From Oikopleura dioica (taxonomy: Eukaryota > Animalia > Chordata), in contig OU015568.1 of assembly GCA_907165135.1 (NCBI GenBank), forward strand, positions 8,804,001 through 8,868,000: a DNA stretch of 64,000 nucleotides, given 5' to 3'. Below the pieces are notes generated by a model. The model saw nothing but the letters and a program-made list of their open reading frames with translations, had not been told where the DNA came from and did no database searches. How positions within the stretch are numbered: the stretch's first letter is position 1; each line of letters starts with the position of its first letter. Both the position numbers and the translations under genes were made by a program. Shown here piece after piece: positions 19,309 through 25,321 of this stretch.

Positions 19309-21966
19309 ATGAGTGATTCGGAAGAGTGGGGCGGGGAAAATGAAGCAGAACTGAGCGGAGACGATGCTTCGGATTATGAAGCACGCCCAGATGAAGCTTC
19401 AGAGTCGTACGAGTCGGAGTCTGACTATTCGGAATCAGAACCAGGTCCTAGTAAGAAGCGCAAGAGGGATCGCCCTCCGAAAAGCACAAAGAAGAAAGCT
19501 GTTGTCTTCGACAATCCAGACATTTCTAATATACCTTCTTCGGAAGTTAAAAAAATTGAAGGCCTCCCAATTCCTTTGTCGATCTGGGATAAGCTAAAAG
19601 ACCACCAGAAGGACGGTGTCCGCTGGCTTTGGAAACGCGTTGGCCACGGTCAAGGGGCGATTTTGGGCGATGAAATGGGTCTTGGCAAGACTGTTCAAGT
19701 TATTGCGATTCTATCCGGCCTATTTGCCGACAAAACGCTTCACAATATCCTGATTATTGTCCCTGCTACGCTTCAAAAGCAATGGGTGCAAGAGTTTCAA
19801 AAGTGGAATACAGCGATCAAAGTCAAAATATTCAACTCTGGAAGAATCAAACCCAATCATGTTTACATAAGTTCATATGAAAAAGTCCGTTCTGATGCAT
19901 CAGGGCTTTTGGACATTGATTGGAACATGGTGATTTGCGATGAGGGCCACAGGTAGGATAGCACTTTTGCTTTTCGTTTGTGCATTCTCCTTGTTGATTT
20001 CAGGCTTCGAAATCCAAAATGCATGACAACTCGCAACATCAAGCGAATCAATTCGACCAAGCGGATCATCCTAACAGGCTCGCCGATCATGAACTCGCTC
20101 ACAGAACTCTGGTCCCTGGTCGACTTCGTCCAGCCTGGATTGCTAGGAAAACTAGAGGTTTTCTCAGTAGAACTAGCGGTTCCTATTCAGCAAGGGAGTT
20201 TGGCTGGTGCTAATCAAATGCAAATCGTGACCGGGCTGAAATGTGCCGAGGAGCTGAGAGCGATTGTCAAGCCTCTATTGCTTCGTCGATTGAAATCAGA
20301 CATCAACCTCGTCAAAGTAGAGAAATCCGACAACGCGCTGTTCATAAAGATGACCGAGGAGCAAGAAGCAGTCTACAGAAGTTATCTTGGGACTCAACGA
20401 GTCAAAGACGCTCTACTAGAGGGCGCTCACTGCTTTGGAATTCTCGCAAAACTTCGGCAGCTGGTCTCGCATCCCTATTTTGTGGGAGATGCTGAAACGG
20501 GGAAAATTACCGATGAACAAATTTCTCGCTCTATTAAAAACCCGACAGTTAGTGGAAAGATGCAAGCATTACTCTCGCTTCTGGGTGGCTGGAGAAAGCA
20601 AAAAAGAAAAGTGCTTGGTAAGTTTTATCAGAAAATAATAAATTAAAAATTGGAGCACTTTTCAGTTTTTTGCCAGTGCTTGCCTTCGCTAAAAATGATC
20701 GTTGGCATGTGCAATCGCAACAATGTCCCAGTTCTGTCAATCTCCGGCCAGACAGCTGTTGCCACCCGCCAAATGCTCATCAATGAGTTCAACGATTCGC
20801 CAGAAGCATTTGCGATGGTGCTGACTTCGCGTGTTGGAGGCGTCGGGCTAAACATTCATGGGGCGACTAGAACTGTAATATTTGAACCTGATTGGAATCC
20901 AGGACAGGACGAACAGGTACCTTTTCAATGTTTCTTCATCAATAAATAGTTTTTAAGGCTGCGGCTAGAATCCATCGCCCTCAACAAAAAGAAAATGTCG
21001 CGATCTACCGTCTAATTACCACTGACAGCATTGAAGAATGGATCTATCAGCGTCAGATCTACAAGCACAGCGTGGCCCAGCATGTTTTATCCGACAAGCA
21101 CAACGATCAGCGCTTATTCGACAAAGCTTCCATGGCATGTTTGCTCTTTGGCAAGGGAGATACGGCAGAAACGTTGAAAATGATCGGCGCGGATATCAAG
21201 ATTGACAAAAAGAAGAAAAAGACAGAGTTGGAGAAAGCAGCTGAAAAAGTTGCAGAAGCACAAGAAAGCTCGATTTCAAAGAGCTTGAAAAAGGTCTACA
21301 AAAAGTTTCCTCATCTCAAGCCGAAAAAGACAGATACGATTGACGGAGAGAAGATAGAAGGGCTCCAGAGTTCGTCGAAAATCGATGTTGGCGAGAAGAA
21401 GGACTACGGGAAGACGGAGGATTGGGTACTAGCGAGATTGTTTAAGAAAGCAGGGTGCGTGATGGACACAGCAGTCGATCAAGCGGCGATAAAACAGGGC
21501 ACTGGTAAGCGATATACATTTTTGATGAGTTCAAAATAATATTTCTACTTTTGTAGACTACAAAAGAATCGACGAAGAAGCCCAAAAAGTAGCTAAAGCC
21601 GCGGTGGCCGCCCTTCACAAGAACCTTAGACAGCCGAAAGTCAAGTCGATCAAAACGAAAGGATCTTCCTCATCCCTCCTTCAAAAGATGCGCCAGCGAA
21701 GAACCGTGGAGGAAGAGGTAGAAGCGCCCATAGCCTTGCCAGATAATGTTCTGAAGAAATCAAAGCTGAATCCAAACTACAAATTGGCGAATAATCTTCG
21801 CAATTACATCGAAGAGTTTTGGCGAGGGCCCACGAGTGACGATTTAATCGCCAAGTTCGATGGAAATGTAAAGGACAAGGCAGTTTTCAAAGCTGTTCTG
21901 AAGCAGATGGCGGTCTTGGATCCGAAAACCAGGCGGTGGAAACTCAAGCCGCAATACGAATCTTAA
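19309..21966 (+). CDS. ERCC6: SNF2-family ATPase, Cockayne syndrome B / Rad26 homolog
   Basis: GAILGDEMGLGKT, CDEGHR|LRNP, IILTGSPIMNSLTELWSLVDFVQPGLLG, LLRRLKSD, LTSRVGGVGLN, FEPDWNP; C-terminal SSSSLLQKMRQR and winged-helix-like end (VFKAVLKQMA...WKLKPQY). Confidence 0.85.
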
Positions 21967-22165
21967 AGATTTTTCTGTAAATAATCACATTTTTTCGCAT
22001 TGATCCTTTTTCTTATTGATATTTTTATCACCATGTTCCTCCTAATGATAGTTCCGAGAATATAACTGACTGTAACGACTACAGTAACTGCCACACAAAA
22101 TATTAATAAAGCTTAAAAAAAAGAATTGACCATTGTAGGATCAGGCAAAGGCGAGTGAAAAGTAT

Positions 22166-22237
22166 TGAAGAAGCCTGGGGTCGAACCAGGGACCTCCGTG
22201 TTCATGAACCGGTGTGCTACCACTGCACTACTTCTCC
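22166..22237 (-). ncRNA. tRNA-derived 72-nt cloverleaf with Pol III A/B boxes in the 3' LTR; anticodon arm degenerate
   Basis: GGAGAAG TA GTGC AGTGGTA GCAC A CCGGT TCATGAA CACGG AGGTC CCTGG TTCGACC CCAGG CTTCTTC A, then ATACTTTT. Confidence 0.8.
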
Positions 22238-22483
22238 GGGGACTTTGTCCGCCATTCGAGCCAGTTACTATGCCTAAGAGGAGAGGACCTTCTCCCACAA
22301 CTCCCTAGTAACTGCTCTAACAACTCGTCTTACATATGCCGCCTTGGGTTTTGGTTCTTTGTCTGGTGCCACGGTCCCCAACCGTTACAAGCCTACCAAC
22401 CCTCCCAACCTTCAGCTTCTCCTGAGCTACTGAGTGAACCTTTGTCAATCTCAGCTTAGGGTTTGTTTTGGCTACCTAGACAA

Positions 22484-22499
22484 CCCACTGTCTTCACCA
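22484..22499 (-). promoter_or_regulatory. Primer-binding site of the TRIM
   Basis: Minus strand TGGTGAAGACAGTGGG, complementary to a tRNA 3' end CCCAC-UGUCUUC-A-CCA (T-stem, acceptor strand, discriminator, CCA). Confidence 0.8.
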
Positions 22500-22534
22500 G
22501 TTTGTAGGATCAGGCAAAGGCGAGTGAAAAGTAT

Positions 22535-22606
22535 TGAAGAAGCCTGGGGTCGAACCAGGGACCTCCGTGTTCATGAACCGGTGTGCTACCACTGCACTAC
22601 TTCTCC
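22535..22606 (-). ncRNA. tRNA-derived 72-nt cloverleaf with Pol III A/B boxes in the 5' LTR
   Basis: Identical to the 22166-22237 copy, offset 369 bp. Confidence 0.8.
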
Positions 22607-23379
22607 GGGGACTTTGTCCGCCATTCGAGCCAGTTACTATGCCTAAGAGGAGAGGACCTTCTCCCACACCATTAATAACGGTCCATTATCGGGGTTTAGT
22701 TGGCAGAACCCAGATGAGATATTCTCCAAGTGACGAGGTCGCAAATTATTATTCTAATGCAGTGGTCAGACTTTGAAGCCAGTGACCCGGTGAGCCGGTG
22801 GTGCTCAGTAATTCTTAATCTTTTCAATTATTCACATACCATTATTGCAGGCTCCATTAAATGTCAGGACTGCCTCGTCCAAACTTCAACTAACAGCAGC
22901 CTAACTTTTATGTTAAACACATGTGATGCTTTTCCCGCAGGTTGAAAAGGTTTTTTCTGACAGATTTTCGATTTCGAAAAAGAGATAAACGCGTATTTAG
23001 CTCAGTGTCCCGTACCTGCTGGTTATAATCGTTCTTGGACTGTATCTTGTTTTTCCGATTATTTTGCTTTTTATTCATATGAAGAACTTAATCCGACAAT
23101 TCATCCGTAAGAGCAATTTTTCGGCGAACGATTTCAGAGCAATACTAATTTTTTAGCTGGAAGACATGTGGAGATAATGGCTATTTGAAGAACTTCGAAC
23201 ACAAAAGAATATTTCAATCCAACACTAGAGAGAAATAAATCTCATTCTGAATGCTTAATTTTTGCAGGGTAGAGTTCTTGCACGGCTGTCAAAAAATGTC
23301 TCCATAAAATGCAAAATTAATATTTGTTCGCGGTACTTTTTGTCTTTGGGGGCTTCTGTTGCACCAGAAACAGCTAAAC

Positions 23380-25321
23380 ATGGAAGAGAATACTTTCAAG
23401 AGACAATTGGGAATCATCGGCGGCATTAGTTTGGCCGCAGGTTCTACTATTGGCTCTGGCATTTTCACAAACCCAACGCTGGTGCTTGGGTACACTGGCT
23501 CCGTAGGTGCGAGTTTGTTGATTTGGGCAGCATGTGGTATAAATGCGATCTTGTGTGGCTTCAGTTATTTAGAAGTTGCCTTATTAATAAGGCAATCCGG
23601 TGGCACTTACGGAACGGCTCTTTGAATATTGATAATTTTAAGGCGCTTTGTTCGAAAAATTGAATATTGGAAAACTTGTCTATATTCTGAGTAAAGCCTA
23701 CTTGAGCGTACTGGCACGAAGCATTTGGCCCAGTCCCTGCGTACTTTGTTTGCTGGTTCTGGTCGGTAATAGATGGCCCTGCGGGATTGGTCATCGTCGG
23801 ACTCACGCTGGCGGATAATATTCTAGCGCCGTTTTACCCCGGATGCTATCCGCCTCAGATACTCGTAAAGATGGTCGCATTCATCGCTGTTCTCCTCCTC
23901 TCAGTAATGAATGGCTACTCAGTTCCGCTTTCAAACAAGCTGCAGATCGTAACAATGGCGGGTAAGATCCTTGTTTTGGGCATGATCGGTGGCGCTGGAA
24001 TCTACAATATCATCATTGGTCAGACAGGGAGTTTATCAACTGGATTCGAGGGCAGCTCAACCAACGTGGCCGACTACGCTGTGGCTTTCTACACTTGTAT
24101 GTGGTCGTATGGCGGTTGGGAGCGCGTGTGCCAGTGTTTCGAAGAGATCAAGAATCCTAGCAGAAATATTCCAATCATCATTGGCGCCTCGATCTTGCTC
24201 ACGACGACCATATATGTTACCGTCAATATTGCATATTTTACGGTGATGACTCCAGCAGAGTTTTTGCAGTCATCAGCAGTCGCGGTCACTTTCGGAGATC
24301 GAATTTTTGGCTCGTTTTCGTGGATTATTCCCGCTGGAATCGCGCTGTCAAGTTTTCAATAACAACAAAGATAATATCTTTTCGGGCATGAAAAACTTCT
24401 ATTAGAGTACTCTTGGATCAATGAATGGTATTTGCTGGGCATATTCGCGAATTCCCTTCATCGGAGCGCGAAAAAACCAGCTGCCGAAGGTTTTCTTGGC
24501 TTTTCAATTTTCATGTCTCGCTAGACCGTTGTCCGCAAGACTTTTATCGGCCTATGAATATGCAAATAGTTGTCTAGCGTTGACAAGATTATGGTCAATT
24601 ATTCTCAAATTAAATGCAAATTAAGCATCTCGGTCTAATTTCATACGAGCGAAAGACGCCTCTCGTCGGCCAAAGCTTTCTGCTGATCATTGCGACTATC
24701 ATGGTGATTCCTGAGTCGACGAATATTGCCTCGCTTATTGATTATGTCTCGCCCTTGACTTGGATTCTAGCGAGCGGAGTGTTTGCTAGTATTTTTGTAT
24801 TCCGATACGGGGTTGATTTGAAACCGGTATTTTTGGAAGAAATCAAGGTTAACCCTCAAAAGCGCTAAGAAAAAGGACAAGAGGGAATTCCGAGTTCCTC
24901 TGGAATGTTTGAAGATTAAACAGAATTAAATTCATTATTCAAACGTTTATTCAAACTTATAAAAGATCATTCCGATTGTCTGAGTATGGGTTTTTCACAT
25001 AAAAAATGCAGAAAGAGGTTATATTCTTAAAGAACCATTTTAAGCTTGATTACCAACTTGGCATCGATTTTCATTCCAATAATTATGCAGCCAAGGAAAG
25101 GATCAATTATGAAAAGGGATTGAGCAAAGAAAGAGCTGCTTGATCCTTTTTGCAGCTTGGAGTACTTGATCGGAGCGGCTGTTATTGCTGCTGGTTATTT
25201 GATCTACATTCCATTTTTCTACTTCGATGTCAATTTTCCAGGCTCCGACAAGATCTATGTCTTCTTGCAGATCTTCTTTGAATGCGTGCCAAATGATTTC
25301 TCGGAAGAAAAACTTGAGTGA
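23380..25321 (+). CDS. SLC7 L-type amino acid transporter light chain (SLC7A9/b0,+AT-like)
   Basis: KRQLGIIGGISLAAGSTIGSGIF; SGGTY|AYWHEAFGPVPAY; WSYGGWE...EEIKNPSRNIP; VYFTVMTPAEFLQSSAVAVTFG; C-terminus FLQIFFECVP. Confidence 0.9.

Follow-up and report, generated by a model that had tools for sequence, protein, structure and literature searches.

Structure of the element

The window analysed here is the whole stretch of 64,000 nucleotides (nt) from Oikopleura dioica (contig OU015568.1, positions 8,804,001 to 8,868,000), and all positions without a contig label refer to it. At 22134-22668 it contains a terminal-repeat retrotransposon in miniature (TRIM) of 535 bp, which is read on the minus strand. 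The element has the complete layout of a retrotransposon with long terminal repeats (LTRs), in the order LTR, primer binding site (PBS), interior, polypurine tract (PPT) and LTR, but it encodes no protein. Each LTR includes a tRNA-like unit with A and B boxes. Very probably this is a non-autonomous TRIM of the Helenus (TRIMp3) type, recently inserted and still polymorphic, with a predicted transcription unit for RNA polymerase III (Pol III) in each of its LTRs.

A search for direct repeats yields a single pair, 22133-22299 and 22502-22668, with 100% identity. The first T, which is common to both repeats, was assigned to the flank, leaving two LTRs of 166 nt each with the minus-strand sequence TGTGGGAG...TCCTACA; these termini are set by the target site duplications (TSDs) at 14 genomic sites. 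The TSD of the window copy is CCAT. On neither strand of the interior is there an open reading frame (ORF) of at least 70 amino acids that starts with ATG. The PBS candidate begins with TGG, 3 nt past the 5' LTR, and a short purine tract, AGGGAG, ends 1 nt ahead of the 3' LTR; among the copies of the family the PPT takes the form AGGG(GG)AG. The identical LTRs, the CCAT duplication, the non-coding interior of 203 bp, the position of the PBS and the purine tract had all been named in the original prediction, and each of them is present in the sequence. Coordinates are collected in Table 1.

Table 1. Features of the miniature element (window coordinates; U3, R and U5 are the unique 3', repeated and unique 5' parts of the LTR)
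Feature	Position	Strand	Remark
TSD, left copy, CCAT (plus-strand letters)	22130-22133	.	Identical 4 nt at 22669-22672
3' LTR, 166 nt	22134-22299	-	100% identical to 22503-22668
T4 run, 3' LTR	22158-22161	-	Predicted Pol III terminator and R/U5 border
tRNA-like unit, 3' LTR (LTR positions 63-134)	22166-22237	-	ARAGORN; Rfam RF00005, 50.5 bits
A box / B box, 3' LTR unit	22220-22230 / 22177-22187	-	
Interior, non-coding, 203 nt	22300-22502	-	13 interiors in genome
PPT, AGGGAG	22301-22306	-	1 nt from 3' LTR; AGGGGGAG in most sibling copies
PBS candidate, TGGTGAAGACAGTGGG	22484-22499	-	First 9 nt are 22491-22499
5' LTR, 166 nt	22503-22668	-	Putative split: U3 about 1-62; tRNA-like unit (proposed R) 63-142; U5 143-166
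T4 run, 5' LTR	22527-22530	-	Read-through needed for a full-length Pol III transcript
tRNA-like unit, 5' LTR	22535-22606	-	ARAGORN; Rfam
A box / B box, 5' LTR unit	22589-22599 / 22546-22556	-	
TSD, right copy, CCAT	22669-22672	.	Empty-site contig of run X6 joins 22128 to 22668

The 72-nt unit is called in each LTR by both ARAGORN and the Rfam tRNA model (RF00005), the latter with 50.5 bits in both LTRs (gathering score 29, E-value 3.4e-9). Its acceptor stem, D arm and T arm are intact, it includes an A box (TAGTGCAGTGG) and a B box (GGTTCGACCCC), and TTTT (T4) follows 4 nt downstream. The anticodon arm is degenerate: two of the five stem pairs are broken, C replaces U at position 33 and the anticodon is the unused ATG, which with A34 is not a normal histidine anticodon. 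A cloverleaf with A and B boxes, TTTT and two mismatches in the anticodon stem had been predicted as well, and the two programs and the sequence agree on it. Energy folding alone gives no cloverleaf and loses the T arm (z-score -0.73). Because thermodynamic folding does not recover that arm, the tRNA call rests on the covariance model. The best 63 of the 3,446 tRNA candidates in the genome score 63-75 bits with Rfam, against 50.5 for the unit. We infer that the tRNA-like RNA is not a working tRNA. Genome-wide, the units inflate tRNA gene prediction with 27 false calls of 'tRNA-His(ATG)'.

Among the host tRNA types sampled, Cys-GCA is closest to the unit (50 of 72 positions identical). A stand-alone tRNA-like gene elsewhere (L017:1501-1572; G000:C1:10853572-10853643) is 80% identical to it. 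This gene scores 51.1 bits with Rfam, is called 'Ser(TGA)' by ARAGORN although it is without the long arm, and shows a compensatory pair difference from the LTR unit in the D stem. Its T7 terminator is located 3 nt downstream, and it is not part of an LTR. The LTR unit may have originated from the lineage of this gene. The 1.5 kb around every copy of the TRIM are free of other tRNAs, so the insertions are not beside host tRNA genes.

In the window, the TRIM sits between a gene for a SNF2-family helicase (19309-21966, plus strand) and one for an amino-acid permease (23787-24362, plus strand), and is antisense to both. It is located about 165 nt past the helicase stop codon (the last ORF ends at 21966), and an AATAAA on the helicase side is found at about 22105.

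A dispersed family in the genome

The whole element was searched against the source genome (64.3 Mb, 19 contigs), which yielded 27 LTRs and 13 interiors at 14 sites. Ten sites hold single full-length copies of 517-542 bp, three hold solo LTRs and one holds a tandem array of four LTRs and three interiors. At 13 of the 14 sites a perfect 4-bp TSD of the site's own directly abuts TGTGGG...CCTACA (AGCG, ATGG, GAGT, GGTC, CGAT, GTAC, GATC, GGAT, TTAT, CTAG, GTAC, GTAC and GGAC); only at L011 is it imperfect (AACC/ACCC). Flanks differ between the sites, except for two solo LTRs. The family has therefore transposed to at least 13 independent sites with 4-bp TSDs, and since the structure recurs at 13 genome sites other than the window, it is not a product of chance. 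The checks suggested with the original prediction (copy number, solo LTRs and TSDs at other loci) thus all turned out positive.

The family is young. The LTR pair is identical in eight of the ten two-LTR copies and differs at one or two positions in the other two. One sibling (L001) matches the window copy at 535 of 535 positions, although it is located 1.9 Mb away on the same contig with other flanks and the TSD AGCG. Two metagenome scans with 22-mers of the family gave no match.

Some sites have a more complex arrangement. The tandem array (L004:771-2037; G000:C1:2724384-2725650) is enclosed by one TSD (GGTC), and its middle interior has a 13-nt deletion and the PBS variant TGGTGAAGATAG, so that the array did not arise simply by recent duplication of a single unit. 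Two members of the same subfamily, L011 (G000:C3:542979-543519, plus strand) and L013 (C3:540168-540709, minus strand), are 2.3 kb apart in opposite orientation and have different TSDs. The two solo LTRs with common flanks, L014 (G000:C5:16057306-16057471) and L015 (C5:16038752-16038917), are the same LTR with the TSD GTAC at a distance of 18.5 kb and represent one insertion inside a segmental duplication.

Empty sites in public read sets

Logan contigs of three DNA runs from three studies (X1, X5 and X6) cross the insertion site without the element. The contig of X6 shows exactly the junction with a single CCAT that had been predicted for an empty site: it joins 22128 to 22668 with six letters in common (ACCATT), the gap measures exactly 539 nt (the element plus one CCAT) and the depth equals that of the flanks. 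X5, which has a different organism label, shows the same gap at a diverged target (GAATCGACT instead of the reference letters). In X1 the left flank occurs as two haplotypes, and a contig that bridges the site is without 549 nt, 10 nt beyond the predicted empty site. The extra 10 nt that are missing from this element-free haplotype (window 22127-22675) are TGACCATTAA, which includes the CCAT target; the target region is either polymorphic for an indel here or has undergone an imprecise loss.

All three runs carry the family itself at several times the depth of the flanks. In X5 a loose contig end matches the flank of copy L011, which indicates that at least one older insertion is common to different organism labels. 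As contigs cannot show the absence of a filled allele, our claim concerns the existence of empty alleles: some of the chromosomes represented in public read sets do not have the window copy. The empty-site contigs, together with the identical LTRs and the siblings with TSDs of their own, bear out the earlier suggestion of a recent, possibly polymorphic insertion.

Sequence constraint across copies

An alignment of the 13 units shows that variation is unevenly distributed. All LTR variation that is common to both LTRs of a copy, and hence inherited from the parent RNA, falls at LTR positions 13-62, in the putative U3; within this segment substitutions occur at 11 sites, together with a 10-nt deletion and a 1-nt indel. 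No change is seen at positions 1-12, which form the integrase end. Over positions 63-166 (tRNA-like unit, T4 and U5) the only changes are a substitution and an insertion, both in copy L007 and each confined to one LTR; these private changes are decay after insertion. The tRNA-like unit is invariant in 26 of the 27 LTRs, the exception being the L007 LTR with a 1-nt insertion in the D loop. The interior likewise begins with 37 nt that vary at a single place, PBS position 10, and there only in the middle unit of the tandem array. No other PBS variant occurs among the 13 interiors, and the PBS is identical in the ten copies compared. Among the variants listed for other runs, the LTR positions are 31-43 (30 further differences exist beyond those listed).

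The contrast between 11 sites in 62 nt and one in 104 nt is significant (Fisher p = 9e-5), with the reservation that the sites were counted along a small tree of related copies and are not independent trials. A free U3 next to a fixed internal promoter, R, U5 and PBS is as a Pol III-driven element predicts. Given that any LTR element conserves R, U5 and PBS, we regard this as support and not as proof.

Proposed mechanism

In our preferred explanation the tRNA-like unit of each LTR would serve as an internal Pol III promoter, formed by the A and B boxes, with the T4 run 4 nt behind it as a minimal terminator. Transcription would start at the unit of the 5' LTR, leak past its T4, continue across U5, PBS, interior and the U3 of the 3' LTR, and end at the T4 of the 3' LTR. 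The predicted product is an RNA of about 450 nt in which the terminal repeat R (about 80 nt) would be the tRNA-like unit itself. Reverse transcriptase and integrase would be supplied in trans by an autonomous element of the Ty3/gypsy order that makes 4-bp TSDs.

For comparison we read the terminators of 33 distinct host tRNA genes. In all but two, the first run of T4 to T8 is found 0-6 nt downstream. About one third have T4 only, and most of those have a second T run within about 20 nt, which makes T4 a plausible leaky terminator. With its T4 at the place typical of host genes, the LTR unit looks like a complete host-type tRNA transcription unit. Judged by this arrangement, its default product should be a short tRNA-like RNA.

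Regarding the enzymes, the genome has more than 150 matches to the integrase domain. The sole integrase-bearing family that we read (L098:1574-8060; G000:C2:605773-612259) is a 6,487-bp LTR element with identical 256-bp LTRs, which begin with TA and end with CA, and the TSD CTCT. A single frame of 1,726 amino acids contains reverse transcriptase, RNase H and integrase in this order, and 20 of the integrase matches have this same uninterrupted frame length. The PBS of L098 (TGGTATCAGAG) is located 1 nt past the LTR, and both the PBS and the LTR ends differ from those of the TRIM. These features show that young machinery of the Ty3/gypsy order making 4-bp TSDs is present in the genome.

For the primer, we screened the genome with five patterns: the exact complement of the PBS, a T loop combined with ..TCTTCA, a T loop combined with ..CTTCA, and acceptor pairs with and without a T loop. 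These patterns assume a standard T loop and standard spacing, and the host tRNA catalogue is incomplete (Rfam scored 63 of 3,446 candidates). The T-loop and acceptor patterns returned the 27 LTR units and, apart from these, nothing but non-tRNA sequences. A 13-mer complementary to the PBS, with one mismatch allowed, returned only family copies and matches at chance level, none of which is in a tRNA. The twelve host tRNA isoacceptors sampled have no match to the PBS of 6 nt or more.

Several candidates that emerged from these searches could be rejected. None of L078-L081 and L093-L097 is a tRNA on reading. L094, which matches the PBS at 14 of 16 positions, is a chance match, and L093 (G000:C1:8893560-8893660), like about eight similar sites, belongs to a short repeat in which GGTTCAACTCWAGAAACCTTCA mimics the T arm and 3' end of a tRNA, with no call by ARAGORN. 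The frequent 12-mer TGGTGAAGCCAG is one mismatch away from the PBS, but it is part of a different repeat and does not mark the end of an LTR; nor are LTRs found next to the four other exact PBS 12-mers. Occurring at least 17 times on contig 1, TGGTGAAGCCAG falls in four of the seven occurrences read within an unclassified dispersed repeat (L082:628-639 and 1761-1772, L083, L086, L087), which also has subrepeats resembling GAAGAAGCCAGGATTG and is unrelated to the TRIM.

Evidence against the mechanism and alternative explanations

A number of observations weigh against the explanation that we prefer. The T4 directly past the unit of the 5' LTR should stop much of the Pol III transcription before the PBS is reached. 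The body of the predicted transcript is free of T4, but so are 58% of the shuffled sequences, and the depletion of T runs is hence not significant. One oligo-dT RNA run (about 1.8 billion letters) contains no read on any copy. The genome-wide pattern searches revealed no host primer tRNA, with none complementary to the PBS over 8 nt or more. With respect to the partner, nothing ties L098 specifically to the TRIM, and a genome BLAST finds no autonomous element that matches the LTR ends, PBS, PPT or interior of the TRIM. Searches with the whole element, with U5 plus PBS plus leader, or with the PPT plus the start of U3 yield no match outside the family at E-values up to 10. It should be mentioned that TRIMp3 elements need not have LTR sequence in common with their partners (PMC10886601).

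One variant is compatible with our preferred explanation and adds to it: the TRIM might prime itself. The LTR unit would be transcribed by Pol III, stopped at T4, trimmed by RNase P and RNase Z and supplied with CCA, after which it would anneal to the element's own PBS and prime reverse transcription. We consider this a tentative possibility with the odds clearly against it. The unit ends in ..GGCTTCTTCA and, extended with CCA, pairs over 9 contiguous nt with TGGTGAAGA (interior positions 4-12), followed by a small internal loop and four more pairs. The duplex has an energy of -19.6 kcal/mol against -13.1 +/- 2.6 for shuffled leaders (17 of 1000 shuffles are as good). End processing and CCA addition require the acceptor and T arms, and both of these are intact, degeneration being confined to the anticodon arm. 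Across all copies neither the unit nor the first 9 nt of the PBS varies, apart from the D-loop insertion in L007. The negative searches with ..TCTTCA and ..CTTCA tRNA shapes and with the twelve isoacceptors point in the same direction, as far as the incomplete catalogue and the presumed T loop and spacing allow. PBS pairing in LTR retrotransposons covers about 8 pairs for Ty3 and 10 for Ty1, so that nine contiguous pairs are short but within range. However, there are only these nine, and the very lack of variation leaves no test of covariation. The match could also be a relic, with PBS and unit descending from one former host tRNA. Moreover, in none of the described Helenus families did Kojima find the unit to be complementary to the PBS, and the conclusion drawn there is that the unit does not act as a primer (PMC10886601).

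Somewhat less probable, and in our view unlikely, is an ordinary TRIM driven by RNA polymerase II (Pol II) in which the tRNA-like part is a passenger, i.e. a tRNA-derived short interspersed nuclear element (SINE) or a tRNA gene that once landed in the LTR. The genomic RNA would then come from a promoter in U3 or from read-through of a neighbouring gene, and the tRNA-like part would be kept only as R/U5. An origin of this kind, through SINE insertion into an LTR, is proposed by Kojima (PMC10886601). Further in its favour, the conservation of R, U5 and PBS is expected in any LTR element and does not by itself single out the Pol III boxes, and the T4 past the unit would hamper read-through by Pol III. 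Yet U3 positions 13-62, the expected place of a Pol II promoter, form the most variable part of the LTR and tolerate a 10-nt deletion. By reading of the sequence there is no TATA-like motif in the 62-nt U3, and the LTR is without AATAAA. The lack of reads in the oligo-dT run speaks against any strong Pol II transcript with a poly(A) tail in the sample concerned, while being uninformative on Pol III RNA; it fits a non-polyadenylated Pol III RNA but proves nothing.

Finally, a local tRNA gene duplication or a family of working tRNA genes has next to no probability, since the call of a tRNA by ARAGORN and Rfam is set against 14 dispersed sites with LTR structure and TSDs, an empty allele, the defects of the anticodon arm and the low score. 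Local duplication had been named as the outcome for a single locus without siblings, and it is refuted by the sibling sites with TSDs and by the empty-site contigs. In contrast, the identification of a TRIM whose LTRs each carry a tRNA-like Pol III cassette holds.

Comparison with known elements

Helenus (TRIMp3) was described by Kojima (Kojima 2024, Biology 13:119; PMC10886601), and the original prediction had correctly named it as a group with tRNA-like LTR sequence and 4-bp TSDs in animals. According to this paper, Helenus arose several times, so that homology is not required by definition, and its chordate hosts are coelacanth, sturgeon and paddlefish, and ostariophysan fishes (PMC10886601). 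The text makes no mention of Oikopleura, tunicates or Ciona (PMC10886601), and a full-text literature search revealed no report of a TRIM or Helenus from Oikopleura. Genomic RNA made by Pol III, the strict sense of TRIMp3, has so far been validated for Cassandra only (PMC10886601).

The element from O. dioica resembles Helenus in many respects. It is well below 1 kb (535 bp), has two LTRs and no coding capacity, and each LTR includes tRNA-derived sequence with a conserved box A (TRGCY..YGG) and box B (GGTTC). Between the LTRs are a PPT and a conserved site starting with TGG, for which the searches gave only the element's own unit as a match (9 nt) and no host tRNA over 8 nt or more. The TSDs of transposed copies measure 4 bp, which is true of every animal Helenus, there are solo LTRs as well as tandem arrays, and the tRNA-like part is not a credible working tRNA. 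On each testable feature except a named host primer the element thus agrees with the definition of Helenus/TRIMp3, to which it is assigned by architecture and not by sequence homology. Judged against the hosts in Kojima 2024 and the literature, it is the first tunicate family of the known Helenus kind.

Differences from Helenus exist as well. Apart from the tunicate host, the family is small, with 27 LTRs against hundreds to thousands in several of the listed families, and neither a host primer tRNA nor a gypsy element with a similar PBS was found in this genome. The PBS is complementary to the element's own unit over 9 nt, whereas Kojima found no such complementarity in any family (PMC10886601). 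This complementarity, together with the confinement of inherited LTR variation to U3 positions 13-62, is what is new here.

Cassandra of plants and Ajax of nemerteans are likewise elements without protein in which each LTR encloses the Pol III promoter and terminator of a small RNA. Their LTR part, however, derives from 5S ribosomal RNA (rRNA) whereas the unit here is of the tRNA type with A and B boxes, their TSDs are 5 bp and not 4 bp, and R is 18 bp in Cassandra against a predicted length of about 80 nt here. Cassandra is the only one with transcripts shown (as summarised in PMC10886601). An Rfam search of 21000-24000 by E-value gave no 5S match and only the tRNA in the element, which excludes a Cassandra or Ajax identity. 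A retrozyme, which has a hammerhead ribozyme in each LTR, is excluded too, with no ribozyme family at E-values up to 1 in the same region.

A tRNA-like head with A and B boxes, short length, lack of coding capacity and a borrowed reverse transcriptase are also typical of tRNA-derived SINEs (SINE2). The element differs from these in having LTRs, a PBS, a PPT and TSDs fixed at 4 bp, and in being without an A-rich tail or one derived from a long interspersed nuclear element (LINE). Its LTR structure and fixed 4-bp TSDs exclude a tRNA-derived SINE and suggest LTR-type machinery rather than target-primed reverse transcription. With ordinary animal TRIMs (PbTRIM in ants, the TRIMs of bivalves and that of Echinococcus) it has in common the size, the layout of LTR, PBS, PPT and LTR, the lack of autonomy and the tandem arrangements. 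To our knowledge those TRIMs have no small-RNA gene in the LTR, and they are taken to be transcribed by Pol II.

Significance

With this family the Pol III-type miniature LTR retrotransposons (Helenus/TRIMp3) now include a tunicate member, from a genome that is among the smallest and fastest-evolving of all animals. If the self-primed variant is true, the TRIM would need only the enzymes of its partner and no host tRNA. This would represent a new means by which a non-autonomous retroelement becomes independent of host tRNA choice. The open question for the class is whether the tRNA-like unit of the LTR drives a Pol III genomic RNA and how the terminator within the LTR is bypassed. A family that is small (27 LTRs), young and still polymorphic, in an animal that can be cultured, provides a practical system for this class.

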